Positions 19,297-56,652 of a stretch of DNA of 64,000 nt are shown one piece after another. Below the pieces are notes generated by a model. It had not been told where the DNA came from, did not search any database, and saw nothing but the letters and a program-made list of their open reading frames with translations. The stretch is taken from positions 124,001-188,000 of IMG/VR virus record IMGVR_UViG_3300042889_001272. The stretch is one strand, 5' to 3'. The translations under genes and the position numbers were made by a program. Numbering within the stretch: position 1 is the first letter of the stretch; every line of letters begins with the position of its first letter.

Positions 19297-19300
19297 TTTT

Positions 19301-19972
19301 ATGTATAAATTAAAGACCCAAGTAATAGAATTAGAACTAACTTCAAAATGCACACTGCTATGCCCTGAATGTGCTAGAACCATGGATAAAGAAGAAACTA
19401 AAAACAAATGGAATTTTGGTGAGTTAGATATAGAAATTATAGAAAAATTGGCCAGCCAAACTCCTTACATAAGAACATTTAATTTTTGTGGTGGTTACGG
19501 TGATCCAATTTATCATAGCAGACTATTTGATATAATTGATATTTGCCATCGTTATAATAAATCAATTCACATAGAAACTGCGGGCAATCTTAGAAGCAAA
19601 GAATGGTGGAATAAATTGTCATTAATCCTCGGTGAACGCGATTCTATTTGTTTCAGTGTAGACGGATTAAAACATAGTAATCACATTTACAGAATAAATT
19701 CCAATTGGGATAGCATATTGAATGCCATGACTATCATGAGTGAATCATCATGCCATACGAAATGGAAATGGATATTGTTCAAATCTAATCAAGATGATGT
19801 TTTGGAAGGTTACAAATTAAGCAAGAAACTTGGTATTAAAAAATTTGAGCTAGTGGAAAGCGGTAGAATAACTCCGGGGAATGAGCCTACTAAATCAGTA
19901 AAGCAGATTTTAGCAGAGTTAAGAGAATATAACGAAACACAAGGACTTGACAACTATATTATTTTAAAGTAA
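19301..19972 (+). CDS. radical SAM protein (core only; likely start 19301)
   Basis: CTLLCPEC, CGGYGDP, IETAG, FSVDG, KWKWILF. Confidence 0.88.
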   Translation: MYKLKTQVIELELTSKCTLLCPECARTMDKEETKNKWNFGELDIEIIEKLASQTPYIRTFNFCGGYGDPIYHSRLFDIIDICHRYNKSIHIETAGNLRSKEWWNKLSLILGERDSICFSVDGLKHSNHIYRINSNWDSILNAMTIMSESSCHTKWKWILFKSNQDDVLEGYKLSKKLGIKKFELVESGRITPGNEPTKSVKQILAELREYNETQGLDNYIILK

Positions 19973-19975
19973 AAT
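19947..19975 (+). promoter_or_regulatory. sigma70-type promoter for thyX
   Basis: TTGACA-N17-TAAAAT. Confidence 0.65.
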
Positions 19976-19997
19976 AATACTTTTAAAGAAGTTATAA

Positions 19998-20882
19998 ATG
20001 ACACTAAGAACAGAAATTAATTTTGAAACAGATAAGAACTATCTTCCAGTATTGGATCATGGTTTTGTAGGTCTTGTTGACTACATGGGCAGTGATAGCG
20101 CCATCGTTCAAGCCGCTCGTGTTAGTTATGGTGCTGGGACAAAACAAGTTCAAGATGATAGAAACCTAATCCGGTATCTAATGCGTCACGAACATACTAC
20201 ACCTTTTGAAATGTGTGAGGTAAAGTTCCACATTAAACTTCCTATCTTCGTTATGCGACAGTTGGTACGTCATCGTACTGCCAGCATGAACGAATACAGT
20301 GCTCGTTATAGTGTGCTTACAGATGAGTTTTACATTCCCGAACTAGAACAAATCCAAAAGCAAAGCACAAGTAACAAACAAGGGCGTGAAGATGCCGAGT
20401 GGGGCTTTGAAGAAAAGCGTGGCGTTCAACATGCCTTCCAACGTAGCTTTCATAATGCATACAAAGAATATGCAAGTTTGCTAGGTAAGGAAGATTCTGG
20501 ACTAGCACGTGAGTTGGCTAGAAGTGTGCTTCCGGTAGGCGGATATACAGAATTGTATTGGAAAGCCAACTTGAAGAACTTTTTACACATGGCTCGCTTG
20601 CGTATGGATCCACATGCACAATGGGAGATCCGTGAGTTTGCAGGTGCTATGTATAACTTGGTTAAACCTTTGTTCCCAGAGGCTTGCGTGGCATTCGAGG
20701 ACTACGCTGTTAACTCAGTTAAGTTGAGTACTGGAGAATATCAGCTTGTTAAGAGTTTAATCAGCAAAGAAAAATGGGCTACTATGGTTACAAAATACGG
20801 CAATGACGAAAAAGCCCTGGGACAAGACGTAGGGCTTGGTGCTCGTGAACTCAAAGAGTTTAAAGAAAAATTAGGCTTGTAA
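19998..20882 (+). CDS. thyX: FAD-dependent thymidylate synthase
   Basis: AARVSY, HTTPFE, RQLVRHRTASMNEYSARY, ARSVLP, HAQWEIR. Confidence 0.97.
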   Translation: MTLRTEINFETDKNYLPVLDHGFVGLVDYMGSDSAIVQAARVSYGAGTKQVQDDRNLIRYLMRHEHTTPFEMCEVKFHIKLPIFVMRQLVRHRTASMNEYSARYSVLTDEFYIPELEQIQKQSTSNKQGREDAEWGFEEKRGVQHAFQRSFHNAYKEYASLLGKEDSGLARELARSVLPVGGYTELYWKANLKNFLHMARLRMDPHAQWEIREFAGAMYNLVKPLFPEACVAFEDYAVNSVKLSTGEYQLVKSLISKEKWATMVTKYGNDEKALGQDVGLGARELKEFKEKLGL

Positions 20883-21425
20883 AGGATCAACGCTGATTTC
20901 ATTTATATGAAACTCAGCGGGTTGTTCTAAAATCCATTTAATATAACTAGCCGCACCCTGAATAGGAATTGTTTTCCTGTCAGGGTGTTTTGCTTGTACA
21001 TTACTTAAACTGCCAAAGCTAATTAATGTGACTCTGGGGTTCTTTGCCCAGACTCCGGACATGCCTAGACTATTAGCGTAATCGCGCAATGCTTTCTTTT
21101 CAGCATTATAAAGCCAATCTGTGGCTTTCATCACTCTGTCAGTAGTACTACCTATACAAATAATCAAAGTTTGTTTGCCTGCTAGTTTAAGTTTCTTGTA
21201 TACCGCTTCGAGTAGCAAAACTTGATTAAACTTCCATAATGCACTATTAATAATTACTGCATCATAATCAACACTCATCTCGGCAAATACTTGTTGATTC
21301 TCTGCTTTAGTTAAATCTAAATCATGAGTTGTTCTACTTACAAATGTTAATTCATGTTGTGTTAACTCTAAATTTAGTGCCTCTGCTAGACCAAAATCTG
21401 GATTACCTGATATTAATATTTTCAT
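20871..21425 (-). CDS. short-chain dehydrogenase/reductase-like protein
   Basis: ILISG..FGLA Rossmann start, IINSA, IGS, YxxxK (YNAEK). Confidence 0.7.
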   Translation of the reverse strand: MKILISGNPDFGLAEALNLELTQHELTFVSRTTHDLDLTKAENQQVFAEMSVDYDAVIINSALWKFNQVLLLEAVYKKLKLAGKQTLIICIGSTTDRVMKATDWLYNAEKKALRDYANSLGMSGVWAKNPRVTLISFGSLSNVQAKHPDRKTIPIQGAASYIKWILEQPAEFHINEISVDPLQA

Positions 21426-22588
21426 AAGAATGTTGTATCTCCTGGGAACAAAGGTAATTTAGTGCCTGGCGCACGTTTTGGAATCTTACTGTCAGCACTA
21501 CTCACACAACTTGTTCCGCCACAGGGCATTGGTTTATCGTATAACTTGAAGCCGGTTTCGATATGTCCTAATGGAACTTCACTACAACTGTAACTACGTT
21601 TTACTGTGCCATCTGGTTCGCGGATAATAATACTTCGATAGCCACTGCTACACTCCCAACCATTGAAGTTGTTAAAGTTGAATGCGTTAAAACGTTCTGC
21701 CTGATCCATGAACCATGGATTTCCTTCTTTATCAACAAATTCGATTTGATAATGAGGGTCAACATCGACTTGTTTTTTACGACTAGGATCGGCTCTATCA
21801 ATTATAAAAGTAGGTTTTGGACGTTGAACAAGGCCTGCGGCTAATGCTTTTTCTTCTGTGTAAGCACGTTGTGGCATACCATTGTGTAACTTAGCCAACA
21901 TCTCGGGTGTATAACCATCTACTACACGGCTTGCTGTGGGATCGCTTTGTGGCTTGAGTGTAACGTTAATACCTCTATTATGAAAGTATAAACTTAGATC
22001 ATAAATCTCGTTGAACTGCTCTGGAACCATGACCATGTTGATAGTAATCTGAGTGTCATATTCTTGACACAAGACTAACTTGTCAGCAAACTCTTCAACC
22101 TTCTTATCAGTGTCGACGTGTTCACGATGACAACTTGCTGTGATACTAGCACGATGGAAGTGCTTGACTGCTGGTACATACTTTTCTTCAAACCATTTAA
22201 TCGGTCGACTCATGTTACTGGTCATATGTACACTAGTATAGTTTGTGTTAGCCGCATCATTGTTTAAGTGATTAAGGATATCAATGTACGCAGGATGGAA
22301 TGTGGGTTCTCCGCCACTTAAACTAAAGTGGAAACTATTAAATCCATTTTCTCTTGCTTGACGTTTGATCTCGTCCACAGTATGCAACATCAAAGGAGTG
22401 GGACGATGATCTTTAGTATCACTGCGAGCATAAGGCCAGCAATAACTGCAACGATAGTTACAGTAGCGTCCTAGTAGCCACGATACGGTAAACATATCGC
22501 GGTATAGCATTGTTCTTTGTCCAACTCTAACTAGATCCTTAAACGGAATCTTAGTAAAGTCATAATCACTGGTTTTTAAATCACTCAT
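21422..22588 (-). CDS. radical SAM protein with C-terminal SPASM/twitch
   Basis: CNYRCSYC, SGGEP, TSN; WECSSG...DG...C...CVSSAD. Confidence 0.92.
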   Translation of the reverse strand: MSDLKTSDYDFTKIPFKDLVRVGQRTMLYRDMFTVSWLLGRYCNYRCSYCWPYARSDTKDHRPTPLMLHTVDEIKRQARENGFNSFHFSLSGGEPTFHPAYIDILNHLNNDAANTNYTSVHMTSNMSRPIKWFEEKYVPAVKHFHRASITASCHREHVDTDKKVEEFADKLVLCQEYDTQITINMVMVPEQFNEIYDLSLYFHNRGINVTLKPQSDPTASRVVDGYTPEMLAKLHNGMPQRAYTEEKALAAGLVQRPKPTFIIDRADPSRKKQVDVDPHYQIEFVDKEGNPWFMDQAERFNAFNFNNFNGWECSSGYRSIIIREPDGTVKRSYSCSEVPLGHIETGFKLYDKPMPCGGTSCVSSADSKIPKRAPGTKLPLFPGDTTFL

Positions 22589-22811
22589 TTTGTTCGTAGA
22601 TAAATTTTACGTCCTTGCCCGGACCGACTTCGCTGGGCATGCCACCGTATTGCTTGACATACCATTCTATGGCTGCGATGTACCAACCTTGACTGTTATG
22701 TCTACTTTCTTTGTTAAAAATATATATATTGTCGTTGGTTGCTGGCATCGTACTTATAATGCGGGCCGCTTCTAATTGTAATTTGCGTAATGGAAGATCT
22801 TGTATATTCAT
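22581..22811 (-). CDS. hypothetical protein
   Basis: 76 aa, overlaps both neighbours. Confidence 0.65.
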   Translation of the reverse strand: MNIQDLPLRKLQLEAARIISTMPATNDNIYIFNKESRHNSQGWYIAAIEWYVKQYGGMPSEVGPGKDVKFIYEQNE

Positions 22812-23785
22812 TATACATATTTATTTTTTGTTGCCATCAAATCTGGCATACACCAACAAGTGTTATAGGGACAGATTACTCCGGAAGTAGGTAAGTTCAT
22901 AATATTTGATTCTTTCCAATTACCAAAATCTTCGTCTGTGCCTATCATACATCCACTACCCCTGCGTATTGTGCCATTGGCATCAAGTGTTATTTTATCA
23001 ACTCCTATACCACAGCTCCAATCTTTAAATTTGTTTTGTTCATCCACAAGTATCTGTCCTGTGACTTCTTGCAAGCGTTGTTGCCTCAAATATGTAAAAC
23101 TAGACTTATATATACTCTTTCTGGACTTGGCTACTTTTCTGTTTGCTTGTATATAGTTCATTTGTTCTTGTGTATATAATACTTTACTATCTGCAACAGC
23201 TTCGTATCTGTTATCCACTAATTTTAATTCGAGACTGGTAAACTCTTTGACATTGTTTAATATGTACTCGCGAGCTTCGAGTACCTTATCCCAAACTGCT
23301 GGCCAAGCAAGAATCAATATAGTCTTATATTCATTGTCCAATGCATTTATACTTTCCACAAACTTTTCTACACTTTTGACCTGTGTAGGATGATAACTGA
23401 ACACCACCGAAGATACCTGTGTACCTATTCTACGCCAATAATCTTCAGGCATTACTCCATTGGTAATAAATTTAATATTACTATCTGGACTATTTTTTTT
23501 AATTATATCTATAGCTTCGGGTAGTTTTTTCCATATAGCAAGTTCGCCGCCCAGTAATGTATATTCAAGGCGCCGACTTTTTCCATAATGTGATTGTAAC
23601 TCGCGTGTAGTGTAATCAATGCTGTCTAAACTAGGCCAGCCAAAACTACCATCATGTATTATGCTGGGACAATATTCGCAGGCATAGTTACATACGTTGG
23701 TCATTGTCCAATCAATGATTACCCAATCAGGATCTGCCTGTATCCTATCAAACAGTAAAGTTTTCATATAATTCCGGGCAGACAT
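22811..23785 (-). CDS. radical SAM protein with C-terminal SPASM/twitch
   Basis: CNYACEYC, LGGE, ITNG; WSCGIG...C...CPYNTCWC. Confidence 0.92.
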   Translation of the reverse strand: MSARNYMKTLLFDRIQADPDWVIIDWTMTNVCNYACEYCPSIIHDGSFGWPSLDSIDYTTRELQSHYGKSRRLEYTLLGGELAIWKKLPEAIDIIKKNSPDSNIKFITNGVMPEDYWRRIGTQVSSVVFSYHPTQVKSVEKFVESINALDNEYKTILILAWPAVWDKVLEAREYILNNVKEFTSLELKLVDNRYEAVADSKVLYTQEQMNYIQANRKVAKSRKSIYKSSFTYLRQQRLQEVTGQILVDEQNKFKDWSCGIGVDKITLDANGTIRRGSGCMIGTDEDFGNWKESNIMNLPTSGVICPYNTCWCMPDLMATKNKYV

Positions 23786-24947
23786 CCCGTAGACTTTGAT
23801 TGCGTTTATTATCTAATAATGATGTAAACTTTTTAAAATCATGCCAGTTTGCACTTGTTTTTGTCATAGTAAGATTTTTTTTCATATTATCCAAAAAGAA
23901 TTTATTAGCAGGATCGTATTTTTGTTCTACATACTCTATTTGTGCAAGAGCTTTTTGTTTAATACTATCTGGTGCTGTGGCAACATGCAAGTATTGTGGG
24001 TGTGTAAGTAATCTATATTCTATCCACTCGACGGGTCGTTTAATAAGAGATTCTGCCCAGTCGTAAAACTCTTTTACGTTTAGCATATTGTATATTTGAT
24101 AGCTGGCATTGGGACTGAATAAAAAGTTCTTGTATTCGTTCCTGAACTTGCATAACATGTCTATTTTACCCGTGAGTTCTTCCCAAGTGCATTGCTCTCC
24201 GCCACGCATGTATTCGAATAACTTGCCCGTACCATCTACACTGATATTAATATTAACTGATTTTGCTTTGCGTAAACGTAATAAATGTTCTTCCCGTAGC
24301 AAACTACCATTGGTTGTTATACTCAGTCTAACATTCTTTAGTATACCCGAATTGTCCAGCACATCAAATACATCCAATAAATCATTGTTAATAAAAGGTT
24401 CTCCGCCGGTTACAGTTATCATACGAAGATCTGTTAATTGTGGCAATAAGTTGGTGACAAATGTCATTAAGTCATTTCTGTTCTTTGTGTAGTCTACATA
24501 TTCTTCTCGCTTGAATCCATTGTCTCTCAGCAACTTATCGTCATTGATCCAACTGTTACTGAACATGCTGTTGCACATTCTACATTTAAAATTGCAGAGA
24601 TTACTAGTATTCAAAAACAAATGATATATGTTATTTCCAGTTTTACTGTTTTCAAAGTCTTTACTGTCCCATATATCACCATTCCACCAACGCTCATTAT
24701 TTTTCCAATTAAGACGCTGGCTTACCACGCCCTGTTTCTCTCGCTCGTGACAGGTATTACAGCCCGGTAGATTCCAAACTCCATCCACCATGTCTGTACG
24801 TAATTGCACAAACTTTCCATTGTCCCAGACATTTTGGTCTGTCATTAGTCCCATGGGCGTTGAACTCATCATGCATCTACTTATAAAACCAGCAGGATGT
24901 GTAGATATACTTGCAAATGGAATTAAACAAACTTTATCAGGTATCAT
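23748..24947 (-). CDS. radical SAM protein with N-terminal twitch-like domain
   Basis: CLIPF...RC...GCNTC; CNFKCRMC; TGGEP; TTNG. Confidence 0.92.
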   Translation of the reverse strand: MIPDKVCLIPFASISTHPAGFISRCMMSSTPMGLMTDQNVWDNGKFVQLRTDMVDGVWNLPGCNTCHEREKQGVVSQRLNWKNNERWWNGDIWDSKDFENSKTGNNIYHLFLNTSNLCNFKCRMCNSMFSNSWINDDKLLRDNGFKREEYVDYTKNRNDLMTFVTNLLPQLTDLRMITVTGGEPFINNDLLDVFDVLDNSGILKNVRLSITTNGSLLREEHLLRLRKAKSVNINISVDGTGKLFEYMRGGEQCTWEELTGKIDMLCKFRNEYKNFLFSPNASYQIYNMLNVKEFYDWAESLIKRPVEWIEYRLLTHPQYLHVATAPDSIKQKALAQIEYVEQKYDPANKFFLDNMKKNLTMTKTSANWHDFKKFTSLLDNKRNQSLRDVCPELYENFTV

Positions 24948-26106
24948 TTAGTTCTGGTACTAGCTTGGATATAGCTTCATCTCTACTTGCATCTAAAGTT
25001 GTTGTGTACTTGACAAAAGCAGGCCATTTATTATTCCAGTCTTCTGCTATCATGTAATCTATTAATGATGTCACCCTTTTAATATTCAAATAAGGTTGCA
25101 GTCGTTGTATTGCCAGCTTTTTTAAATTTTCGGGCAGGATGCGTACATTTAAATAATCAGGGTGATCCAATATGTTTAAGTGTATATCAGTTATAGACAA
25201 GTCAGTGAGATAATCAAAAAACTTGTCTAATTGTAATACATTGTATACCTGTACTGTACAATGAACTTGAAGATCTATCTTGCCCTGTTCACTCATCTCA
25301 ATAAAAGTAGCAAGATTCTTTTCCACCAAAGCCCAGCCTGTTGGATATCTAATATATCTATTGAGATCACCATGGGCATCTATGCTTGCATTGATTTTAA
25401 TCTTCTTAAAATGTTGCCAATAGTTTACTAGTTTCTTGGGCAAATTAGTACAATTTGTATTGTACTTCAAAGTAATGTTTTTAGCAAGATCTAATTCAAT
25501 TAACTTATCAAATAGTTTATATTGACTCAACGCCAAAGTTGGCTCGCCGCCTGTTAGATAAATTTCTTCAATAGTATTTGCCAACTTTAACAAGTTAACT
25601 GCAACTGCGTCGTCATTGGGCCAATCCATACTGCTAAGACGTTTAATTTCAGAATCATTTAACTGTTGCTCAACTAAATGCCATTCGTCTACCCATTGAT
25701 TACTAGCATATGGATTACACATGCGGCATTTTAAATTGCACAAGTTGCCCAAGCGTATATCAATATATTGTACTGTAAGTTCAGGAGTTGCAGTAGGTTC
25801 ATAGTCAAACATATACTTTTCATTCCAGGCTAGTCTTGAACTACGTACACCGCTGTCTTCCTCTCTAAAGCAACGTTCACACATTGCAGGCCTTTGATCT
25901 GTTAGTAGTTCACTGCGAATTTTCTTCATAGTGTCACTGTGCCAGAAATCCTGCATGTCAGGATCTGTGATCTTATACGCTTTGTTTGTTCCATTGCGTA
26001 GAATAAAGTTTTTACCGGGTGTACTATTACAGCATACTCGTAGGTTGCCACTGGCATTGGTTGCTAAATGCATCCATGGTAGAATACAGAATGTTTTACT
26101 TTGCAT
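24937..26106 (-). CDS. radical SAM protein with N-terminal twitch-like domain
   Basis: CILPW...VCC...CERC; DIRLGNLCNLKCRMC; TGGEP; YNTN. Confidence 0.93.
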   Translation of the reverse strand: MQSKTFCILPWMHLATNASGNLRVCCNSTPGKNFILRNGTNKAYKITDPDMQDFWHSDTMKKIRSELLTDQRPAMCERCFREEDSGVRSSRLAWNEKYMFDYEPTATPELTVQYIDIRLGNLCNLKCRMCNPYASNQWVDEWHLVEQQLNDSEIKRLSSMDWPNDDAVAVNLLKLANTIEEIYLTGGEPTLALSQYKLFDKLIELDLAKNITLKYNTNCTNLPKKLVNYWQHFKKIKINASIDAHGDLNRYIRYPTGWALVEKNLATFIEMSEQGKIDLQVHCTVQVYNVLQLDKFFDYLTDLSITDIHLNILDHPDYLNVRILPENLKKLAIQRLQPYLNIKRVTSLIDYMIAEDWNNKWPAFVKYTTTLDASRDEAISKLVPELNDT

Positions 26107-26836
26107 TTAATTCTTCTAATAATAAATCGTAACTTCTACACATGACTTCTGCATGTTTCTCCCCAGGCGCACCGTGTATAATCATATGAATTCTAGGTTC
26201 TGATCCTATGTGTCTAACACTATGACGTCTACCTATGTCTATTGCTCTTGCATCGCCTGGTTGCCATGGAATTAATCCCGCATCTTCCATGACAAATTCA
26301 ACTCCATCTGGATTATTGATGGCAATATTGTATGCTGCCATTTTACGAACTTCGTAGTCAGCATGTGGTTTAATATAGCCACCCGGCAATAAAAGCATAA
26401 ACCTAACACGATCGAAATGTTTGAAATTCCATGTATTTTTTAACCAGCCAACAGTTACAGGACAAACGTCTGCAATATCAGTCCACGTATACACTGGTTG
26501 TTCTGTGAAGTTATATACTTTACTGCGCCAGTCGTCGGTGGTGTATTTGTCATAGCCGTGGATTACAAGACTATGCCAGCCAGGATGCTCGTTGCCTCTG
26601 TGTTTTACAAACTCATCCATTAAAGATAACGCTTCGGCTTCTATTTCTTTTTGTGGTAACGGCAAGTCCAACTTAAGACTGGGGCAGTTGCTTTCTTTTT
26701 CTATCCAGCTAAAGTAATCTTTCATTAACTGCCTGTCTGATCTCCAATTAGAAAACTTTTCAGGGCGTGTATTTAATGAACTATAGTGTGAAAAGTCTTT
26801 CCACTCGTCGAAAAATTCTGTTACTTCGTTATCCAT
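26096..26836 (-). CDS. aspartyl/asparaginyl beta-hydroxylase-like 2OG-Fe(II) oxygenase
   Basis: RVRFMLLLPGGYIKPHAD...HSV...PRIHMIIH. Confidence 0.8.
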   Translation of the reverse strand: MDNEVTEFFDEWKDFSHYSSLNTRPEKFSNWRSDRQLMKDYFSWIEKESNCPSLKLDLPLPQKEIEAEALSLMDEFVKHRGNEHPGWHSLVIHGYDKYTTDDWRSKVYNFTEQPVYTWTDIADVCPVTVGWLKNTWNFKHFDRVRFMLLLPGGYIKPHADYEVRKMAAYNIAINNPDGVEFVMEDAGLIPWQPGDARAIDIGRRHSVRHIGSEPRIHMIIHGAPGEKHAEVMCRSYDLLLEELNAK

Positions 26837-28221
26837 GGTAATATCTCCAGTGTTTTAACTCGGTGTAAGAATTGATCTGGATTGTCAAGTATTTGTCTAG
26901 GAGTTTCATTCCTCCAATTTGACTTGATTCCCGGCCTGTTTTGATACAATTGAAACGTATCCATGCCAGCATCAGAAAATTTATCAAGAATATCTTGTTC
27001 TAGTCTATACCTGGATACTGCACTGAACAACCAAGAAGTGTTCTGATAGTGCAATATATTTGTTAAATGTACATACGTTTTTTCACCGACATGACCGGCC
27101 AGAAGTTTATTTTTCACCTGATTAACGTCGAATAAATTACACGGCTCAAATATTACATTCAAATTTGGCCATACATTTTTAATGAAATCTTCTAGGCCCT
27201 GTGGCATCATTTCATTTATAATTTCCTGCATTCTATCTAAATTGCGATCAGCTTTCATCATAGGTATCAGGTCTAATTCTGTAAACAAGCTGTACAAAGT
27301 TGTTTTAAAATTTGAATAGTTGCAGTTGATTTCTCGAAGTCGTCGTTGTATTGCCAATGAAACTGGACTAAAATCAAAAACTGTGACTCGGCCGCCGGGT
27401 TTTAATCCAGCTGTGTATGCCATGAGCAATGGAGTTATACCACTTGCGGTACATATCACTCCCTGCATGTCTGTGTCTAATAATTTTTCTGGGGGCGACT
27501 CTGTGTTTGCCGCAAAGTGACCATAGCCTTGTAAACTTTCCAATACGTCTGAAATTTTAGAGTGAAAGTCTTTGGCAACTTCTGGATATATATAATACTT
27601 ACTTTCTCTCATGGACTCATCGAAACTAACTACAGAGCTGCCAGACTTTAATGCAGTGTCGATTATGTTCCAGCCAAATCGTTTTCCTGCGTAATTTTCA
27701 ATGGCATTGCCCTGAGCGATCCAATGTGGTGTATATCCATCATGCCAATTTTCTTCACTGCGTATTGGTTTAACTGTAGACCACGGTCCGCTAAATTCTT
27801 CTTTGCCTATCAATGGTCGACCATTTGCTCGCCACCAATCCATGTTAATAATAAAACATTGATGGTGCAATTCGTAGAACTTGTCGCCTTTGTCTAATAT
27901 ATGTCCTGCAACTGCAAAGTTGGGATTATTTTCTAGAAACTTTGGAAGTACGTGATAAAAATTATCATGCTTGCTGAGATTAGTGCCCATGGCTACAATC
28001 ATCAAATATTTTAATCCGGCAACATCTGCCCATTTTAAAATAGCATCCGGATCTTTATTGCATGTTGTTGGCAGATAATAGTTTTCATTTTCCTGAACCC
28101 AGTATTCCGTTATGTTTTTAGACAGCGAAAGCGCAGTAGAGTCCTTGATATAATCAGTTATGTCCAGCCATGCCATACCGAAGCCGATGTTACTTAAATG
28201 TTTGTACTGGTAATATGCCAT
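26821..28221 (-). CDS. hypothetical protein (possible two-domain transferase)
   Basis: 466 aa; no confident family; ICTASG / VFDFS in the C-half is weakly Rossmann-like. Confidence 0.75.
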   Translation of the reverse strand: MAYYQYKHLSNIGFGMAWLDITDYIKDSTALSLSKNITEYWVQENENYYLPTTCNKDPDAILKWADVAGLKYLMIVAMGTNLSKHDNFYHVLPKFLENNPNFAVAGHILDKGDKFYELHHQCFIINMDWWRANGRPLIGKEEFSGPWSTVKPIRSEENWHDGYTPHWIAQGNAIENYAGKRFGWNIIDTALKSGSSVVSFDESMRESKYYIYPEVAKDFHSKISDVLESLQGYGHFAANTESPPEKLLDTDMQGVICTASGITPLLMAYTAGLKPGGRVTVFDFSPVSLAIQRRLREINCNYSNFKTTLYSLFTELDLIPMMKADRNLDRMQEIINEMMPQGLEDFIKNVWPNLNVIFEPCNLFDVNQVKNKLLAGHVGEKTYVHLTNILHYQNTSWLFSAVSRYRLEQDILDKFSDAGMDTFQLYQNRPGIKSNWRNETPRQILDNPDQFLHRVKTLEILPWITK

Positions 28222-28224
28222 TAA

Positions 28225-39276: not shown

Positions 39277-39280
39277 AATA

Positions 39281-40235: not shown

Positions 40236-40251
40236 AATATTTTAAAAATAT

Positions 40252-41004: not shown

Positions 41005-41014
41005 GATTTTTCCT

Positions 41015-45432: not shown

Positions 45433-45456
45433 TATACTAGTATTTAATATTTTTAC

Positions 45457-48008: not shown

Positions 48009-48720
48009 TTTCGTTGTAGAGTTCTTCGCTGGGTTTTATCCCAGTGTAAATCTCAAATTGTTTTAAGAATTGACTGCGATAAAACTCACGCCCAGATACA
48101 TATTTAATATTATAATTCTGACATTGTTGTTTAAACTCGTTGTTCTTAATGGCCAAGTCGATTACCAACCTTGTGTCGGGGGGTATTTGTCCCAACATAT
48201 ATGGACTTTCATCAGTGCTTGTTCCCAATGCTGTACAGTTAATTATGATGTTTGCAGTCTTATACCGTTCATTCCATGTACTTAGATTCCTGGCACAAAC
48301 ATTTAAGTTTCCGTAATGTTCTTCTTCTAGATATTTAACGAACATACTGCCTATGGCTCCTGCACCCAAAATAGTTATTTTATCTGTTTTATTGATATGC
48401 TTGCAAACATGTTCAACGCCTGCTAGATCGGCATTGTATCCATGAGTCTGTCCTTTGTTTATCTTAATAGTATTACAACTATTGTAAAGTTGTACATAGG
48501 GATGTTTTTTATTCAAATATGATATAATGGACTGCTTAAAAGGCATACTAACACTGATTCCAGCGACGTCGTCTTCAATGGCCTGCGTTATTGCTTTTTC
48601 AATATCAGTACAGGCCAATGGTTCATATGTTGCATCTATATTATAGTGTTTAAAGAATTCTGTGTAAAAATATTGCCCAGTCTTTCCTGGAAATTTACTT
48701 AGACTTATAAATTTTTTCAT
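47980..48720 (-). CDS. shikimate dehydrogenase-like oxidoreductase
   Basis: SVSMPFK, CNTI, GYNAD, LGAGAIG, INCT, QF.IYTG. Confidence 0.85.
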   Translation of the reverse strand: MKKFISLSKFPGKTGQYFYTEFFKHYNIDATYEPLACTDIEKAITQAIEDDVAGISVSMPFKQSIISYLNKKHPYVQLYNSCNTIKINKGQTHGYNADLAGVEHVCKHINKTDKITILGAGAIGSMFVKYLEEEHYGNLNVCARNLSTWNERYKTANIIINCTALGTSTDESPYMLGQIPPDTRLVIDLAIKNNEFKQQCQNYNIKYVSGREFYRSQFLKQFEIYTGIKPSEELYNEIESRQYETI

Positions 48721-49055
48721 CGTTTGTACGCTCTTATTTCTCTTATTTTATTATCTTGATCAAAGTCTATAACATCTATTACTGGAATTGCAACTTTATT
48801 ATCTAATATAACTTTGATCTCTGCTATAACAGTATTATGGCCCATGGCAATTTTATCAATTTCTATTCGAATATTCCCCAACTGTGAAAACAATGTTTGA
48901 TTAAATGCCAATACATTTTCTCTGCCGATCATTTGTCCGTCCCAGTCTGTTAATATTACATTTTCAGCAAACATTGTTTCCAAGCTGGTCAAATCCTTTT
49001 CACTGAATGCTTTTAAGTAAAGCATGGCAATCTGACTCTGTGTGGCTTTACCCAC
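48717..49055 (-). CDS. SnoaL/NTF2-like protein
   Basis: YLKAFSEKD...FAENVIL.DW...G.E.V...DVIDF...KI.EIRAY. Confidence 0.8.
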   Translation of the reverse strand: MGKATQSQIAMLYLKAFSEKDLTSLETMFAENVILTDWDGQMIGRENVLAFNQTLFSQLGNIRIEIDKIAMGHNTVIAEIKVILDNKVAIPVIDVIDFDQDNKIREIRAYKR

Positions 49056-50601
49056 GATCTAACTCCGCAAATAGTTTAATACCCAAGTACCATAGGAATA
49101 TATCAAATGGAGCAGTGTGCAATGGGCTCATGTTCCAAAAGATTATCGGTATTAATTGTTGTACTTTATTATAATCTAAATTGTTATCTACGATGTATTT
49201 CTTCAACCGCTGTTGATATACGGTGATATGATCGACATTCGGAATACTCAATGTTACACTGCTGTCTTCGATTTCTATGTTAAAATTATGATTCTTAATG
49301 TTGGCATAGTTGATGATCAACCCCCCGGCCATTTTAGCCAAGTCGTAGTATATATCACCGTACTCGACTAGGCCTGCGAACTCATGTCGCCAGTCAATGA
49401 TCTTAAACTCTCCGCTGTCACTGATGACAATGTTATCAAACTGTAAATCACCGTGCAGGAATCCCGGGCGGGTAACTTGTGCAAAATATTCCCAGTCTAT
49501 CTTATTTAAATAATAACTATGGTCTCGGACTTCTATGCCGTCGATGTTGGTCACTGGTTTTAAACCAGGATACTTTTCTAAAAACTTGTTGATACGTGAC
49601 AGTGATTTTGTTTTATAGAACTCAATGCTGGCATCATGTATATCAGCATCTATGTCTCGCCACACATTTTTTTCCAGCCAATTAAGCAATTCATTGAATG
49701 CCACTGGATTGTTGAACTCGTATAATGTCTTGCCTGGAAAGAAATCATAGGCCATATAATTGCCGCTGTGCGTACAGTTGGCGGGGAAGACATGTGGATT
49801 AGCCAATACTTTGTCATACTTCTTTTTGGCAACTGTGTTATCTAGCCACCATTTAACTACACGATTGTTACAAATATATGTTACTTCGTCTTTTTTTGTA
49901 AAGTCGAATTTTTGGCTTTTACTTAATTCGGTTTGATATATTGTTGGACTGCCAAAGTCTAACCATGTATTAAGATTCGCAGTATCACTGCCTAGTTTAA
50001 TAATACCAATAAACTCATTACTGTGACTTTGTTCCAAGTCTGCAAAAAATGTTGTATAGTCATTTATATACATCAGCCCTGTAAATGCCGACCAAGTTGC
50101 AGGAGTAGTTTCTTTAAACTTGATCTCTTGTATATGAAAACTATTGTTTTTGTTAAACATTGTATAAAGATGCGTGTCTTGTTCAGGCACTGACTTAACA
50201 AAATAACAATCCTTGTTTCTAACTAAATCTACCACTGTTTGGTCAAAGTAAGTGTCACAGGGTACATACCAAAAAGGTGCATCTATTACCTCTTTACATT
50301 GTAGCAATGTGTATCCGGTTCCTGATTTAGCACTGGTCCAGTCGTTGATGTGTAAAAATTCTATATTTCTGTCACTATATGCTACATTACAAAAATCTAT
50401 AATTTGTTCTTTTAGATGTCCAACAGGTATAATAAACTTCGTATCCTTGGGAAAGTTATCTATGATATGTCCTAAAACTGGTTTATCTTTGTAAGGCAAT
50501 AATGCCTTATTAAGATTCTTAGTATAATTGCCCATTCTACTGCCAAGCCCGGCTGTAGGAATAACAACAGTATTACTCATGTTCGTAGCTGATTCTACCA
50601 T
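49048..50601 (-). CDS. nucleotidyltransferase fused to an APH/choline-kinase-like phosphotransferase
   Basis: N: IPTAGLGSRMG..K.LLP, PCD, WLDFG; C: HGDLQFDN, IIDWR, YDLAK. Confidence 0.85.
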   Translation of the reverse strand: MVESATNMSNTVVIPTAGLGSRMGNYTKNLNKALLPYKDKPVLGHIIDNFPKDTKFIIPVGHLKEQIIDFCNVAYSDRNIEFLHINDWTSAKSGTGYTLLQCKEVIDAPFWYVPCDTYFDQTVVDLVRNKDCYFVKSVPEQDTHLYTMFNKNNSFHIQEIKFKETTPATWSAFTGLMYINDYTTFFADLEQSHSNEFIGIIKLGSDTANLNTWLDFGSPTIYQTELSKSQKFDFTKKDEVTYICNNRVVKWWLDNTVAKKKYDKVLANPHVFPANCTHSGNYMAYDFFPGKTLYEFNNPVAFNELLNWLEKNVWRDIDADIHDASIEFYKTKSLSRINKFLEKYPGLKPVTNIDGIEVRDHSYYLNKIDWEYFAQVTRPGFLHGDLQFDNIVISDSGEFKIIDWRHEFAGLVEYGDIYYDLAKMAGGLIINYANIKNHNFNIEIEDSSVTLSIPNVDHITVYQQRLKKYIVDNNLDYNKVQQLIPIIFWNMSPLHTAPFDIFLWYLGIKLFAELDRG

Positions 50602-51022
50602 GTGTTCTACCTGCGTCGTCTTGTAATCGAATTACATCATCTAATTCTGTTGTGCTGGTTTCCATGAATTCTAAATCAGTGTCAGCGATTACTCTGTGTA
50701 CATAGCCTGGTTGTACATTGAATACAACACCGGCTTTAAGTTCTATACGTTCGAATGTATATTCGTAGGCTTCTACTTGCCTAGACGTCATGCCTTGTTC
50801 TAAAAACTTGGCAATGTCCAGTGGTTCTCGACTGCGATGTAACATGCCTGTGCCGCTGAGAACGTAGTTAGTTTCTATCTTATATTCGTGTACTTGTAAG
50901 CTGGTTCTATTGCCCGCTTTGAATAAAATACGTTTACTGGCATACGGAGTTTGGCTTCCATCTGCAATCCAAAGCTCGTAGCCCCAGTGTTTAGTTACTT
51001 TTTTAATTTTCATCATGCCCAT
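50573..51022 (-). CDS. cupin (mannose-6-phosphate isomerase-like)
   Basis: KHWGYE, SLQVHEYK.ET, PGYVHR, EtST.ELDDVIRLQDD.GR. Confidence 0.85.
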   Translation of the reverse strand: MGMMKIKKVTKHWGYELWIADGSQTPYASKRILFKAGNRTSLQVHEYKIETNYVLSGTGMLHRSREPLDIAKFLEQGMTSRQVEAYEYTFERIELKAGVVFNVQPGYVHRVIADTDLEFMETSTTELDDVIRLQDDAGRTHGRISYEHE

Positions 51023-53549: not shown

Positions 53550-54426
53550 AGTTATAAATTGAATTCAATTTTGCTTCCACTGCGGTGCTTCGCATCACTG
53601 CATATTCAAATGGATTTACGCAGTTTGGGTGTATGGATAATTCTGTCATGTAATTATATAATAAACAACCGGGTCCTAGCCATAATACTTTATCCAAGTT
53701 TAAACCACATTGATTCTTAAATTGATATTCCATGGGGCGGGAGATTTTATGAAAAGAATATAGATCTCCCATTAAATCCATGGTAGGACTATCACCATAA
53801 AATAACACATCATCAAAATTATTAGAATTAAATTCTGAGGCAAATTTGCTTACGGGTGTAGCTGTATAACAAACGCCTGGCCAAACTCGTTGTAAAGGAA
53901 ATCGATGACTAGGGTTGTAAATGACATCCAATCTTGCCTTAATAACTAAGTCATATTGAAAACTTTGTTTCAATTCATAGTCTCTTTTAAGCATTAAACT
54001 TCTTGCAAAGCTATAGAACATTGGATCCCAGGCACGTTTGAATTTTTCTTTATCAAATTCTTGTTGTATAAAACCCTTTGGCTTATATGTTTCTATAATG
54101 GCATCTCGATCATTGTGAATCACATCAGTATAAACAGTGATATCTGTTTTGGGCAAGCGCCATGTATTGGTATCCCATGTATGAATAAAGTAATCAGTTT
54201 CTACATCCAAGCCATTTTCTGGGTGCGGATATTCGTGTTCAAAGAAACGTTTAATGTTGGCAACACTTTCCTGCCAATAACGTGCTTGACCACTGAAGCA
54301 AACTGCAATTCTAAATTTTCTTTTAGGTTCCGCTGATAGCGGCTCTGGTATTTCAACCTGAATAGGCGCACTACGCAAATTGCCAGTAAGTGAGTCTATT
54401 TCAACATTAAATAAGCTCATGTCCAC
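53509..54426 (-). CDS. hypothetical protein, SGxxR family
   Basis: IAVCFSGQAR, FIHTW, YDLVIKARLD, DD.LFYG. Confidence 0.65.
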   Translation of the reverse strand: MDMSLFNVEIDSLTGNLRSAPIQVEIPEPLSAEPKRKFRIAVCFSGQARYWQESVANIKRFFEHEYPHPENGLDVETDYFIHTWDTNTWRLPKTDITVYTDVIHNDRDAIIETYKPKGFIQQEFDKEKFKRAWDPMFYSFARSLMLKRDYELKQSFQYDLVIKARLDVIYNPSHRFPLQRVWPGVCYTATPVSKFASEFNSNNFDDVLFYGDSPTMDLMGDLYSFHKISRPMEYQFKNQCGLNLDKVLWLGPGCLLYNYMTELSIHPNCVNPFEYAVMRSTAVEAKLNSIYNYEEIRRKWFEWYI

Positions 54427-55255
54427 CTAATTCTCCTTCTAATCCTGATTTTATTTTTCTATCTAAGTAGTCCTGACTCCTGAATATTTTAGGATCAACT
54501 GACAATGGGGATATTTCTATGTTTAACATCTTTGCATAAAAATACAATGCGTGTTCTGGGCCCACTAGATTATTACTGTTAAAACTTTTCTTTCCTATAA
54601 TCGGCAACCATCTATAAAATTCACAGATGCGGTTAAATGTAACAGTGTCAGCAAACCAAAATACGTCGCCCAATCTATGAAAAGGAAATTGTTCAGGATC
54701 TTTTCTAGTATGACAAGTATAAAAAGTATTAACTTCTGGATACACTAGATCATATCTTACAAAATGATCAATTTGATAATCATCAAAAAACATGTCGTAT
54801 CTTATCTTGATGCATAAATCATAATGAAAATCATTTTCGAACTCGTGAATTTTCTTTAAGTGAGCGGCTCTCATCACGCTATAGAATTGGCCGGCGGCCC
54901 AATCTAATTTAGTTTCACCGTGCTCATTGAGATGTACAGCATTTTGTTCGCGCACATCTTTGATTTTATTTTTGTTAGAAAATTCATCTTCAAATACACA
55001 CGCTTTGGGTTTTATTATATCTACAAATCTCTTCTTTTCATCATCAGATATTTTGTCTCCGGGCACGGTATTATAATCCCAGCCTTCGTGCATTAACAAA
55101 CGATGGGGCGGCGAATTATAATCCCATACATGACAAAATATGTCTATGTCATCGACTTCGTATGATTGTTTGATTTTATCAATTAGTTTAAACCACGTAT
55201 GATAACATTTTTCCCATGTTCGGGGTTGTCCGCTGATACAAATAGCCACTTTCAT
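54407..55255 (-). CDS. hypothetical protein, SGxxR family
   Basis: VAICISGQPR, FCHVW, YDLCIKIRYD, GD.FWF, GPE. Confidence 0.65.
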   Translation of the reverse strand: MKVAICISGQPRTWEKCYHTWFKLIDKIKQSYEVDDIDIFCHVWDYNSPPHRLLMHEGWDYNTVPGDKISDDEKKRFVDIIKPKACVFEDEFSNKNKIKDVREQNAVHLNEHGETKLDWAAGQFYSVMRAAHLKKIHEFENDFHYDLCIKIRYDMFFDDYQIDHFVRYDLVYPEVNTFYTCHTRKDPEQFPFHRLGDVFWFADTVTFNRICEFYRWLPIIGKKSFNSNNLVGPEHALYFYAKMLNIEISPLSVDPKIFRSQDYLDRKIKSGLEGELGGHELI

Positions 55256-56652
55256 TTAGCATTTTTCCATTTAGTATAGTAAGGTTCAAACTCAGGAAAT
55301 GTAGCCAAAAAGTTTGTTCCTCTGCGTTTGTCGTGCTCATCCACAAACGCAACTAGATCCTTTTGATATACTGTAACTTCCTCTGGATCTTTTTGATTCA
55401 TTGTTAATTCATATATACGTTTAAATTTTTCAGCTTCCCATTTGAAAAATCCTTGATTAGCACTTCCATACCATTCACCGTTTTCTAAATTACGATACAT
55501 CATTGTTACTTGATTGAAAATATATTCTTTTGCCCAACTTTCTGGCATAACATGAAAGATGCTTTGGTGCGCTGGGTGCCTTAGAAACGGTGCATCTAAA
55601 ATTAACGGAGCATGAACATTGTTCCAGCCACCGAACTCGTTTTTAATATCTAATACATCTTGTAAGAATAACGAATATGTAGGTACACTAAGAACATTGT
55701 AGGTACTCATGATAGTAATAGTACACTCTGGGATTTCTTTTAATACCCTGCGGATGTTACTTAACCAAAGTTCATAATTCATACCATCACGAATATATTC
55801 TGCAGCCTTGCCATGAGCATCACAGCTTGTAAAGATTTTAAACTTTTTAACTTTCTTTTCTTCGCAGATAATTTTAACTTTTTCAAGGAATCTGTCAAAT
55901 AACTGTGGTGGCACACACAAATTGCTGTTAATGCTCAGGTGTATATCTGGATTAGGATTTTCAATGACATAGTCAAGAACTTTAAAAGTATCTTTACTTA
56001 GTAAAGGTTCTCCGCCAGTTATCCTAAAGTGCTGAAGTTCTTTATAAACAGTGGGCCACCATTTCCAGAATGCTTCCACATAAGGATTGTATTGATTGTG
56101 CGGAATAGGCATTTGATCAATTTGTTTAAGGCCAGCAATATCATTGAAACGGCCGTGTGTTGGATATGGGCCATGTTGTTTAACTTCTTCCATCCACAGA
56201 CTACTGACCTGTGGACTACAATAGCTACATTTAAAATTACAGACGTTACTGAAACTGACTTCCAGATAACTAGGAACAACGTCACTGTCCCATGGCAAAT
56301 TGCGAACTTCGTCAAAGTGAGGCTTTGCCCATACATCATAGCTCTTATAGATTCTATCGCTGAGTGCATCTGGTGCGCTGTCCTCTACTTTCCAGCAATA
56401 GTCACATTCTTTAGGACGGGCACCTTCCAACATTAACTTACGCTGTTCTTTTTTAAACTGTGTATTATGTAATGCACTGGGATTAGCGGCTAGTTCGTCT
56501 AAAGGAATTTTGTGCGTAGTGGGATGGTGACAACTGTGGTTGTGACCTGTTTGCAAATGCAGAGTTACCTGTTTCCACTTGGCAATACAAAAACTAGGAC
56601 TAACGTCGTTAATCTTTTTTTGAAATGCAATGATATCTTTATTGTGTTCCAT
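55252..56652 (-). CDS. radical SAM protein with N-terminal twitch-like domain
   Basis: CIAKW...SCHH...CDYC; CNFKCSYC; TGGEP; NSN. Confidence 0.92.
   Translation of the reverse strand: MEHNKDIIAFQKKINDVSPSFCIAKWKQVTLHLQTGHNHSCHHPTTHKIPLDELAANPSALHNTQFKKEQRKLMLEGARPKECDYCWKVEDSAPDALSDRIYKSYDVWAKPHFDEVRNLPWDSDVVPSYLEVSFSNVCNFKCSYCSPQVSSLWMEEVKQHGPYPTHGRFNDIAGLKQIDQMPIPHNQYNPYVEAFWKWWPTVYKELQHFRITGGEPLLSKDTFKVLDYVIENPNPDIHLSINSNLCVPPQLFDRFLEKVKIICEEKKVKKFKIFTSCDAHGKAAEYIRDGMNYELWLSNIRRVLKEIPECTITIMSTYNVLSVPTYSLFLQDVLDIKNEFGGWNNVHAPLILDAPFLRHPAHQSIFHVMPESWAKEYIFNQVTMMYRNLENGEWYGSANQGFFKWEAEKFKRIYELTMNQKDPEEVTVYQKDLVAFVDEHDKRRGTNFLATFPEFEPYYTKWKNAK

Follow-up and report, generated by a model that had tools for sequence, protein, structure and literature searches.

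Gene content of the radical SAM array

The analysed window, a 64,000-nucleotide stretch of the IMG/VR virus record IMGVR_UViG_3300042889_001272 (positions 124,001 to 188,000), belongs to an uncultivated giant bacteriophage and contains fourteen ORFs with 15 CxxxCxxC radical SAM (rSAM) domains of three subfamilies, referred to here as types A, B and C. The genes sit in a 43-kb operon, a block of 47 co-directional genes with a maximum gap of 54 bp and 37 overlapping junctions, which starts with tail-fibre-like and virion genes and is rich in candidate sugar-handling enzymes (Table 1). No membrane-spanning segment was predicted in any of the 47 operon proteins.

Table 1. Features of the rSAM array and its surroundings (positions in the window)
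Position	Strand	Feature	Supporting data
1866-2726		QueE-like rSAM, outside the array	
3064..4164	+	S-adenosylmethionine synthetase (MetK), plausible co-substrate supply	Pfam, three MetK domains, 7e-56 to 6e-33
18952..19296	+	Detached twitch/SPASM-like Cys domain (114 aa), upstream of its type C rSAM partner	Pfam SPASM 1.9e-5; 37% identical to 39281-39607
19265..19972	+	Type C rSAM (235 aa), CTLLCPEC, GGYGD	46% identical to 39567-40235
20871..21425	-	Last gene of the operon (184 aa), N-terminus Rossmann/SDR-like as read by eye	Conserved in 18 viral loci; no Pfam hit
21422..22588	-	Type B rSAM (388 aa) with 4 C-terminal Cys	Conserved core gene, about 70% identical across relatives
22581..22811	-	Cys-free 76-aa protein of unknown role	Present in 49 of 79 related loci, evenly conserved along its length; no Pfam hit, no atlas lead
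22811..23785	-	Type B rSAM (324 aa) with 5 C-terminal Cys	
23748..24947	-	Type A rSAM (N_Twi)	NF033640, 248.6 bits
24937..26106	-	Type A rSAM	NF033640, 377.4 bits; AF2 model pLDDT 95.4
26096..26836	-	Asp/Arg beta-hydroxylase-family 2OG oxygenase	Pfam PF05118 1.4e-10; family recurs next to bacterial and viral arrays
26821..28221	-	Unknown protein (466 aa)	Hydroxylase / 466-aa / N_Twi trio recurs elsewhere
28225..29532	-	Type A rSAM	NF033640, 307.3 bits
29525..29863	-	Detached Cys-rich C-terminal domain of the type B enzyme 29860-30561	Homologous to the C-termini of 21422 and 22811; dN/dS 0.095
29860..30561	-	Type B rSAM core (233 aa)	
30554..33106	-	Fusion of two type A rSAM units (850 aa)	NF033640, 532.3 bits, 2 stretches
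33099..34373	-	Type A rSAM	280.7 bits
34366..35841	-	Type A rSAM, most conserved gene of the array	415.8 bits; about 70% identity in all 79 related loci; 2751 homologs at E<=1e-10
35838..37100	-	Type A rSAM	373.1 bits
37093..38936	-	Two paralogous unknown proteins (320 and 294 aa)	Distantly related to the DUF6071 protein at 52593-53549
39281..39607	-	Detached twitch/SPASM-like domain (108 aa), downstream of its type C partner	Pfam SPASM 1.8e-7
39567..40235	-	Type C rSAM core (222 aa)	
40252..41154	-	Nitroreductase-fold protein (flavoenzyme-like)	Pfam PF00881 2e-6
41015..42190	-	Type C rSAM (391 aa) with C-terminal Cys domain	Conserved core gene, median 49% identity
42187..43041	-	Class I SAM methyltransferase-like protein (a lead only)	Atlas features and structure; homolog in RsoM2USA gp347
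43034..45432	-	Three GT-A-like proteins: X family 43034-43756 and 44689-45432, Y family 43716-44717	Invariant DxD motif; hhalign X vs Y 100%; AF2 pLDDT 87.3; Foldseek top hits all of the GT-A fold
45457..46929	-	Carbamoyltransferase (NodU/TobZ type)	Pfam 2.6e-53 and 8.1e-33; NodU 1.7e-40, below cut-off
46926..51022	-	Sugar-metabolism-like genes: aldolase-like, shikimate-DH-like, SnoaL-like, sugar-1-P nucleotidyltransferase fused to an APH-like kinase, and a cupin	
55252..56652	-	Type A rSAM, ortholog of RsoM2USA gp349	337.8 bits; 40% identity to gp349
56654..57640	-	GT-A-like protein, Y family, ortholog of RsoM2USA gp350	45% identity
58586..60639	-	Two homologous GT8/Mannosyl_trans3-like proteins (58586-59404, 59397-60293) and a 117-aa protein	Conserved with RsoM2USA gp352-354
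60694..63998	-	Virion and tail-fibre-like genes at the 5' end of the same block	PHROG tail fibre and virion structural hits; 62749-63324 matches an annotated structural protein of phage CBB

A pattern scan of all ORFs identified exactly the 14 ORFs and 15 motifs of the original prediction, the only difference being that the first ORF starts at 19265 rather than 19301. All 14 hit Pfam PF04055, although 34366-35841, with a score of 27.2, falls just under the cut-off of 29.5. The GGE motif is present in every type A and type B copy, and G(G/N)YGD in every type C copy. All-vs-all BLASTP reproduced the three subfamilies exactly as originally proposed. Several details, however, required correction. 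The C-terminal domain of type B proteins, originally described as SPASM, contains 4-5 Cys and is not detected by the Pfam SPASM model, so it is twitch-like rather than a full 7-Cys SPASM. Three enzymes (rSAM 29860, 39567 and 19265) are split into two ORFs, with the Cys-rich or twitch domain encoded separately. Finally, while no obvious short precursor-peptide gene had been noticed within the array, a conserved 76-aa ORF does lie there.

Relationships and conservation of the rSAM proteins

All nine type A domains belong to the NCBIfam family NF033640 (twitch domain-containing radical SAM protein, N_Twi_rSAM), with scores of 248-416 bits per unit over the full model length, well above the cut-off of 170 bits; hence, type A is a catalogued family, but it is only a bioinformatic definition, and as far as we found no member has been characterized and no substrate has been shown for any of them. 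Types B and C, which carry the auxiliary Cys domain at the C-terminus or on a separate small ORF, do not belong to this family (15-54 bits). No match to MoaA, NrdG, viperin or named RiPP maturases was found, every score for these families being far below the NCBIfam cut-offs, in agreement, for MoaA, NrdG and RiPP maturases, with the original prediction.

The only solved-structure match to the type A N-terminal domain is the twitch domain of BtrN (butirosin 2-deoxy-scyllo-inosamine dehydrogenase; PDB 4m7s/4m7t), the founding twitch-domain rSAM, which has a carbohydrate substrate; all four cluster Cys align (E 1.5e-4). In BtrN, however, the twitch domain follows the rSAM core, whereas here it precedes it or resides on a separate ORF. 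Type A proteins are also about 150 aa longer, with an extra C-terminal helical domain carrying an invariant D..R pair, and the overall Foldseek TM to any solved rSAM is only about 0.4. The best sequence and fold matches for the rSAM core are the RS-SPASM peptide and protein maturases, TvgB (8vpo, 2e-12), followed by SkfB, CteB, anSME and SuiB; unlike these systems, the array has no Pfam RRE family reported for any operon protein scanned, no full 7-Cys SPASM, no precursor peptide with a variable core, and no protease or exporter.

All rSAM genes are intact and evolve under purifying selection, with dN/dS against close relatives of 0.035-0.22 and unsaturated dS. The splits and the fusion are conserved in relatives; in one of them (L081), the split of the type B enzyme 29860-30561 is retained, but the two units of the fusion 30554-33106 are separate genes. 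Double units are common in the family. Type A paralogs are 24-32% identical to the first sequence of the alignment, and in a FastTree tree the nine type A domains fall in separate old clades shared with other phages and with bacteria, only 23748 and the N-terminal unit of 30554 being sisters. This fits different steps or substrates, as originally suggested, rather than recent redundancy, and the "expansion" of the original prediction is better described as an accumulation of ancient paralogs.

Genomic context and distribution

The glycosyltransferase and virion context, which was not noticed originally, gives the array a likely purpose. The four X and Y family proteins share an invariant DxD motif, and their confident AF2 model hits only GT-A-fold proteins, the top Foldseek hit of the Y-family model being the PBCV-1 capsid glycosyltransferase A64R (2p72; 15% identity, TM 0.24/0.36). 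Still, this assignment rests on weak Foldseek scores (E 1.6e-3 to 5e-2, TM 0.24-0.36), with no Pfam hit and no PDB sequence hit, and the GT8 and methyltransferase calls are atlas leads only. The X/Y and methyltransferase-like genes occur with the array in 63-68 of 79 viral loci, while the metabolite-like genes occur in only 1-9 of 79.

At least 174 IMG/VR contigs carry the same kind of array, with up to 14 rSAM genes in a row. The cultivated Ralstonia jumbo phage RsoM2USA possesses a minimal version (gp347-355) with one rSAM in the module instead of 15, in which orthologs are found in the same order: fibre-like, gp354 (60286-like), two GT8-like proteins, Y, N_Twi rSAM, X, and the methyltransferase-like protein. 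This module, whose genes are all annotated as hypothetical, lies directly after the MS-confirmed virion genes gp361, gp359 and gp356; the same order was found in locus L146. Of 50,697 isolated phage records, only RsoM2USA has the Y family. Similar arrays are present in Bdellovibrionales chromosomes, where the commonest neighbor families are Glycos_transf_2 and relatives, Asp_Arg_Hydrox, carbamoyltransferase, and PfkB, although GT2 neighbors are only 6 of 99 in the bacterial loci. Elsewhere, N_Twi is fused to an FkbM-type methyltransferase, and one array starts with an NTP_transferase. A T4-like marine environmental viral genome, TARA_ERS488813_N000010, was reported to carry 12 radical SAM genes (Nishimura et al., 2017, PMC5332604), which were only counted in a discussion of Fe-S metabolism, without subfamilies, context or function.

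Possible role of the island

The best, though tentative, reading of these data is that the array represents the tailoring part of a virus-encoded, entirely cytoplasmic glycan pathway in a jumbo myovirus. Sugar-activating enzymes (the nucleotidyltransferase/kinase and others) would supply donors, six or so GT-A-like glycosyltransferases would assemble a glycan, and the carbamoyltransferase, the methyltransferase-like protein and the 2OG hydroxylase would decorate it. Each of the 15 rSAM domains would cleave SAM at its CxxxCxxC [4Fe-4S] cluster to make a 5'-deoxyadenosyl radical, which abstracts one particular sugar C-H, the electron being handled by a BtrN-type auxiliary [4Fe-4S] twitch cluster; the likely outcomes are oxidation, epimerization, deoxygenation or C-C bond chemistry, one step per paralog. 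The likely acceptor is a virion protein encoded at the head of the operon, a tail-fibre-like protein; the absence of predicted membrane-spanning segments makes a cytoplasmic acceptor likelier than exported polysaccharide. The carbohydrate substrate, the chemistry and the virion acceptor are, however, inferred. Adjacency to fibre genes does not prove that the fibre is the acceptor, most characterized SPASM/twitch enzymes act on peptides, and the 76-aa protein is unexplained. Viral cytoplasmic GT-A enzymes and sugar-modifying enzymes are also encoded by chlorovirus PBCV-1 (A64R and partners) and in Mimivirus fibril glycosylation; those are eukaryotic-virus systems, which appear to have no radical SAM battery, and the similarity is at fold level only.

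Alternatively, the rSAM enzymes could modify amino-acid residues of a virion fibre protein or of the 76-aa protein, by epimerization, cross-links, beta-carbon chemistry or formylglycine-like oxidation, as in proteusin-type or anSME-type maturation, with the glycosyltransferases and the hydroxylase adding further decorations. This possibility is supported by the matches of the rSAM core to peptide maturases, by the recurrence of an Asp/Arg beta-hydroxylase family protein, characterized members of which are protein-modifying, by the conserved small ORF next to core rSAM genes in 49 loci, and by the start of the operon in virion genes. It nevertheless seems unlikely: no Pfam PqqD or other peptide-recognition (RRE) family was reported for any operon protein scanned, the N-terminus, where an RRE usually sits, is occupied by the twitch domain, which matches only the sugar enzyme BtrN, and no protease or exporter is present. 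Moreover, the 76-aa protein has no variable core and is absent from RsoM2USA and from the Bdellovibrionales arrays. Somewhat more doubtful is the synthesis of a soluble small molecule, such as a modified nucleotide-sugar or an aminoglycoside-like or nucleoside-like compound, acting during infection as an inhibitor, an anti-defence molecule or a signal, with the rSAM enzymes acting on nucleotide or sugar substrates, as viperin, BlsE, DesII or BtrN do. Structural neighbors indeed include viperins, BlsE and DesII, the TobZ/NodU-type carbamoyltransferase, shikimate-DH-like, SnoaL-like, aldolase-like and kinase/nucleotidyltransferase genes resemble secondary-metabolite clusters, and no membrane proteins are predicted. 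However, no exporter or self-resistance gene was recognized, the constant partners across lineages are GT-A-like proteins and fibre-like genes rather than the metabolite-like genes, and fifteen radical steps on one small molecule would be unprecedented.

Two further possibilities are considered very unlikely. Remodeling of the host cell surface (LPS or capsule), for example to block superinfection, would agree with the glycosyltransferases, carbamoyltransferase and sugar-activation genes, which are typical of surface-polysaccharide loci, and with the GT2 genes flanking the bacterial arrays, but no predicted transmembrane protein (flippase, polymerase, ABC transporter or polyprenyl-phosphate transferase) exists in the 47 genes, and the block is contiguous with virion genes that are probably late genes. 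Hypermodification of phage DNA bases with a glycan-like or other adduct, to evade restriction, could be suggested by other nucleotide and DNA-modification genes of the window (FolE, the QueE-like rSAM, and ThyX) and by the probable participation of rSAM enzymes in some thymidine hypermodification pathways (Lee et al., 2018, PNAS). On the other hand, no pyrimidine hydroxymethylase, DNA kinase, DpdA/TGT-like or DNA-binding domain was found in the operon by the domain searches, the deazaguanine genes lie on the other strand, 17 kb away, and the minimal module of RsoM2USA sits among tail genes.

Radical SAM enzymes and their auxiliary-cluster domains

A motif scan of all ORFs yielded 14 ORFs with 15 CxxxCxxC motifs, and all-vs-all BLASTP reproduced the three groups of radical SAM (rSAM) domains of the original prediction, whose typology is right. 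All 14 ORFs match Pfam Radical_SAM (PF04055), one of them, 34366, just under the cut-off, and all copies retain GGE (types A and B) or G(G/N)YGD (type C). Every type A unit, nine domains in eight ORFs, exceeds the curated 170-bit cut-off of NCBIfam NF033640 (N_Twi_rSAM, "twitch domain-containing radical SAM protein"), whereas types B and C score only 15-54 bits on this model and reach no curated family. For MoaA, NrdG, QueE, viperin and the named RiPP maturases the best scores are 15-68 bits against cut-offs of 131-855 bits.

Four N-terminal Cys of type A, C7, C25, C76 and C79 in the numbering of 24937, are invariant in 16 sequences and form a C-x17-C ... C-x2-C arrangement. A profile of this domain hits only one solved protein, BtrN, at residues 163-237, that is, in its C-terminal twitch domain, with all four Cys aligned (E 1.5e-4); a search with a single sequence missed BtrN. 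A full SPASM domain, with seven or more conserved Cys including a CxxCxxxxxCxxxC block, was not found: only 4-5 extra Cys per enzyme were counted in all three types (4-6 extra Cys at the C-terminus are listed for types B and C), while Pfam SPASM matches are partial and weak, with none in type B. In three enzymes the Cys domain is a separate small ORF, so that the same genome shows the twitch module before the rSAM core, after it, and detached from it. Two paralogous type C enzymes, with 46% identical cores and 37% identical twitch ORFs, have the detached twitch ORF on opposite sides of the core gene, which looks like a domain-order permutation caught at the gene level. The AF2 model of 24937 is very confident (pLDDT 95.4), and yet it matches solved rSAM enzymes (CteB, SkfB, anSME, viperins, BlsE, SuiB, DesII and MoaA) only through the core, at TM of about 0.4; no solved enzyme has the arrangement of N-terminal twitch, core and C-terminal helical domain.

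Against close relatives (loci L002 and L003, dS 0.02-0.55) the rSAM genes have dN/dS of 0.035-0.22, and there are no internal stops; comparisons with relatives at about 90% identity were unusable because dS is saturated. Relaxed selection or pseudogenisation is therefore not supported. The split genes were rejected as frameshifted pseudogenes, since the same two-ORF arrangement recurs in relatives at 84% identity and in more distant ones, and dN/dS is low. The double type A enzyme is two adjacent genes (440 and 400 aa, positions 8867-11354) in L081, a relative whose 34366 ortholog is 84% identical, but is fused in L002, L003 and a further relative, L007; double units are common in the family at large. 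In a FastTree tree of 95 type A sequences, which has many long branches and is indicative only, the nine units fall in separate clades shared with other phages and with bacteria, only 23748 and the first half of 30554 being sisters, so that recent in-genome duplication was rejected for all type A paralogs but this pair. Viral and bacterial sequences interleave, with at least 9-13 label changes forced by well-supported branches. The array is therefore an accumulation of old, distinct subfamilies, neither redundant nor decaying. By contrast, some Bdellovibrionales arrays (L098 and L115, OZ220490.1, chromosomal) consist of four to five very similar type A genes (branch lengths 0.06-0.3) and are recent tandem copies.

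Features of the window discussed in the text; where a single number is given, the gene is designated by that position
Coordinates	Strand	Feature	Observation
57-794	+	GTP cyclohydrolase I	
1866-2726	+	QueE-like rSAM, the 16th rSAM of the window	phrog_2076, 1.8e-50; C32-x3-C36, next Cys only at position 73, not a canonical CxxxCxxC
3064-4164	+	S-adenosylmethionine synthetase	All three MetK domains
7316-8230	-	TctC-like periplasmic-binding-protein homolog	Hydrophobic N-terminus; no PHROG hit
8217-9377 and 9429-10592	-	Two unknown paralogs	49% identical; no PHROG hits
10665-11414	+	PhyH-family 2OG dioxygenase	4.4e-16; outside the operon
18952-19296	+	Detached twitch ORF	Precedes 19265-19972
19265-19972	+	Type C rSAM	
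19998-20882	+	ThyX thymidylate synthase	1.1e-58; converges on the last operon gene and overlaps it by 12 bp
20871-63998	-	Operon	47 genes; no gap above 54 bp; 37 overlapping junctions
21422	-	Type B rSAM	
22581-22811	-	76-aa Cys-free protein	Lies between two type B genes
22811	-	Type B rSAM	
23748	-	Type A rSAM	NF033640, 248.6 bits
24937	-	Type A rSAM	NF033640, 377.4 bits
28225	-	Type A rSAM	NF033640, 307.3 bits
29525-29863	-	Detached Cys domain	Follows 29860-30561
29860-30561	-	Type B rSAM	
30554-33106	-	Double type A rSAM, 850 aa	NF033640, 532.3 bits for two units
33099	-	Type A rSAM	NF033640, 280.7 bits
34366	-	Type A rSAM	NF033640, 415.8 bits
35838	-	Type A rSAM	NF033640, 373.1 bits
37093-38936	-	Unknown paralogs 37093 and 38052	Distantly related to the DUF6071 protein at 52593
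39281-39607	-	Detached twitch ORF	Follows 39567-40235
39567-40235	-	Type C rSAM	
40252-41154	-	Nitroreductase-fold protein	Listed ORF overlaps 41015-42190 by 140 bp; true start probably an internal codon
41015-42190	-	Type C rSAM	
52593-53549	-	DUF6071 protein	
53509-55255	-	Unknown proteins 53509 and 54407	Paralogs of each other
55252	-	Type A rSAM	NF033640, 337.8 bits
61775-62713	-	Virion-like gene	Tail-fibre and virion PHROG hits
62749-63324	-	Virion-like gene	38-41% identical to proteins of Phosso, Atu_ph07 and CBB
63366-63998	-	Virion-like gene	Virion structural PHROG hit

Operon context and distribution of the arrays

The parent contig, IMGVR_UViG_3300042889_001272, is 235,561 bp long, and about 17% of this phage genome is one operon built around 15 oxygen-sensitive, SAM-consuming enzymes, all of them kept by selection. 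Judging from the few marker genes tested, the phage belongs to the Rak2 / CBB / Atu_ph07 / PA5oct / RsoM2USA assemblage of jumbo myoviruses: the CBB homolog of 62749-63324 is annotated as structural, and the ATPase is 52% identical to PA5oct-like phages. The genes at the 5' end of the operon are virion-like. Downstream of them, the operon encodes two homologous GT8/Mannosyl_trans3-like proteins; four members of two homologous families, here called X and Y; a class I methyltransferase-like protein; a NodU/TobZ-type carbamoyltransferase; a sugar-1-P nucleotidyltransferase fused to an APH-like kinase; aldolase-like, shikimate-DH-like, SnoaL-like and cupin proteins; an Asp/Arg-hydroxylase-family oxygenase; and the nitroreductase-fold protein. 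The X and Y proteins have an invariant DxD motif (D57/D59 in X, D78/D80 in Y) and a GT2-like N-terminal strand motif, and the confident AF2 model (pLDDT 87.3) finds only GT-A-fold proteins in the PDB, led by the PBCV-1 capsid glycosyltransferase A64R. However, these matches are weak (E 1.6e-3 or weaker, TM up to 0.36), and no Pfam or PDB sequence hits were obtained, so the X and Y proteins can only be called GT-A-like. PDB profile searches with the Y family and with the methyltransferase-like 42187 family gave nothing significant.

The 34366 protein has 174 confirmed loci in IMG/VR, on contigs of up to 400 kb, and 2,751 metagenomic homologs at E<=1e-10, none with an informative name. The 21-kb loci carry 2-13 rSAM motifs, and many share a core of X/Y, a methyltransferase-like gene, a 75-aa protein, a 41015-type rSAM, the 34366 type (about 70% identity), the 24937 type and the 21422 type. 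The 76-aa protein of the window is conserved along its whole length in 49 of 79 related viral loci; elsewhere it usually sits between the methyltransferase-like gene and the 41015-type rSAM. No family, fold or function was found for it, and an atlas search gave no lead. Contigs deposited as bacterial MAGs (Rickettsiales, Crocinitomicaceae, Gammaproteobacteria, Neisseriaceae, Betaproteobacteria and Verrucomicrobia; loci L112, L083, L084, L118, L141 and L146) carry the viral core genes (X/Y, 75-aa protein, fibre-like gene) and look like phage contigs mis-binned into MAGs. One of them, L112 (NZHE01000012.1), binned as a Rickettsiales MAG and probably viral, has 14 consecutive rSAM genes together with X, methyltransferase-like and 75-aa genes.

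Among isolated phages, Megablast of positions 1-20000 and 21000-45000 against 50,697 phage records found no match, and only one record, the Ralstonia jumbo phage RsoM2USA, has the Y family. In RsoM2USA, gp355-347 repeat the order of the window (fibre-like, a protein like that at 60286, two GT8-like, Y, 55252-type rSAM at 40% identity, X, methyltransferase-like) with a single rSAM in the module, and lie directly after gp361, gp359 (tail sheath) and gp356, which were found in virions by mass spectrometry (PMC8504454). Literature searches for an N-terminal-twitch rSAM, the NCBIfam name, jumbo-phage rSAM, SPASM in phage genomes and Bdellovibrio rSAM found no description of this family or module, except that a T4-like marine viral genome was recorded with 12 rSAM genes, which were not analysed (Nishimura et al. 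2017, PMC5332604); a paper on cyanophage S-SCSM2R mentions a single rSAM maturase only.

A scan of one genome per species, for which a five-sequence alignment was used as a nine-sequence one had no usable conserved stretch, found 135 loci, mostly in Bdellovibrionales MAGs and including Mb-size contigs, with tandem arrays of up to 10 or so rSAM genes of the same subfamilies. Among 99 neighbouring genes, the commonest Pfam families are Glycos_transf_2 (6), Glyco_tranf_2_2 (4), Glyco_tranf_2_3 (3), Asp_Arg_Hydrox (4), carbamoyltransferase (2) and PfkB (2). Elsewhere, a type A unit is fused to an FkbM-type methyltransferase, and another array begins with an NTP_transferase gene. The type A profile finds 8,384 cluster representatives at E<=1e-30, and we found no characterised member.

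Inferred role of the array

The constant partners of these enzymes, in viruses and in bacteria, are glycosyltransferase-like proteins, a methyltransferase-like protein, a 2OG hydroxylase and a carbamoyltransferase; the only structural homolog of the auxiliary domain is a sugar dehydrogenase; and the predicted pathway, which has no recognised membrane component, is encoded as a continuation of the virion-gene block. We therefore tentatively favour a cytoplasmic glycan pathway in which each diverged rSAM performs one radical step on a sugar residue, the product being probably attached to a virion fibre protein, although the carbohydrate substrate, the reaction types and the acceptor are all inferences. 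If these enzymes tailor sugars, they would greatly enlarge the small set of known carbohydrate-acting rSAM enzymes (BtrN, DesII, BlsE, AprD4 and similar) and would reveal a radical-based virion glycosylation system in phages. The enzymes belong to known superfamilies, and type A to a catalogued but, as far as we found, uncharacterised family, whereas the system around them, a rSAM battery coupled to GT-A-like proteins in jumbo phages, with a minimal version in a cultivated phage and relatives in predatory bacteria, was not found described anywhere.

The main alternative, which seems unlikely, is residue-level modification of a protein. It is supported by the peptide-maturase-like core and by the protein-hydroxylase family, but is weakened by the lack of any recognition element or precursor-like gene: no PqqD hit appeared in the Pfam scans, and the 76-aa ORF was rejected as a typical RiPP precursor because of its even conservation, although a large protein substrate cannot be excluded. 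Synthesis of a soluble metabolite appears somewhat less likely still, while remodelling of the host surface and DNA hypermodification are improbable. The membrane flippase, polymerase or transporter and the initiating polyprenyl-phosphate transferase of surface-polysaccharide loci were not recognised; by a crude predictor, no 19-residue window reaches a Kyte-Doolittle value of 1.6 or more in any of the 47 operon proteins.

A more far-reaching possibility, for which present support is low, is that type A, B and C enzymes form a large, unrecognised class of radical carbohydrate-tailoring enzymes, BtrN-like twitch rSAMs with relocated or detached auxiliary domains, which jumbo phages would string together, up to 14-15 per genome, to build hypermodified glycans on their virion fibres. 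Constant gene turnover and exchange with predatory Bdellovibrionales would make this a new kind of viral surface chemistry and a large reservoir of new C-H functionalising sugar enzymes.

Other genes of the window and a different type of array

Upstream, on the other strand, the phage encodes S-adenosylmethionine synthetase, which could feed the 16 SAM-consuming radical enzymes. GTP cyclohydrolase I and the QueE-like protein, also encoded there, suggest a 7-deazaguanine pathway. No Fe-S assembly or reductant genes were recognised among ten small upstream ORFs, and no tRNAs were found. The two unknown paralogs at 8217-9377 and 9429-10592 sit next to the TctC-like gene. Another kind of array was observed in loci L162 and L163 (GCA_027401895.1 and JGI 3300039716), with about ten rSAM genes, including B12-binding ones and a 1106-aa protein holding two type A (N_Twi) stretches and weak TPR matches, flanked by an NTP_transferase and an asparagine synthase gene.
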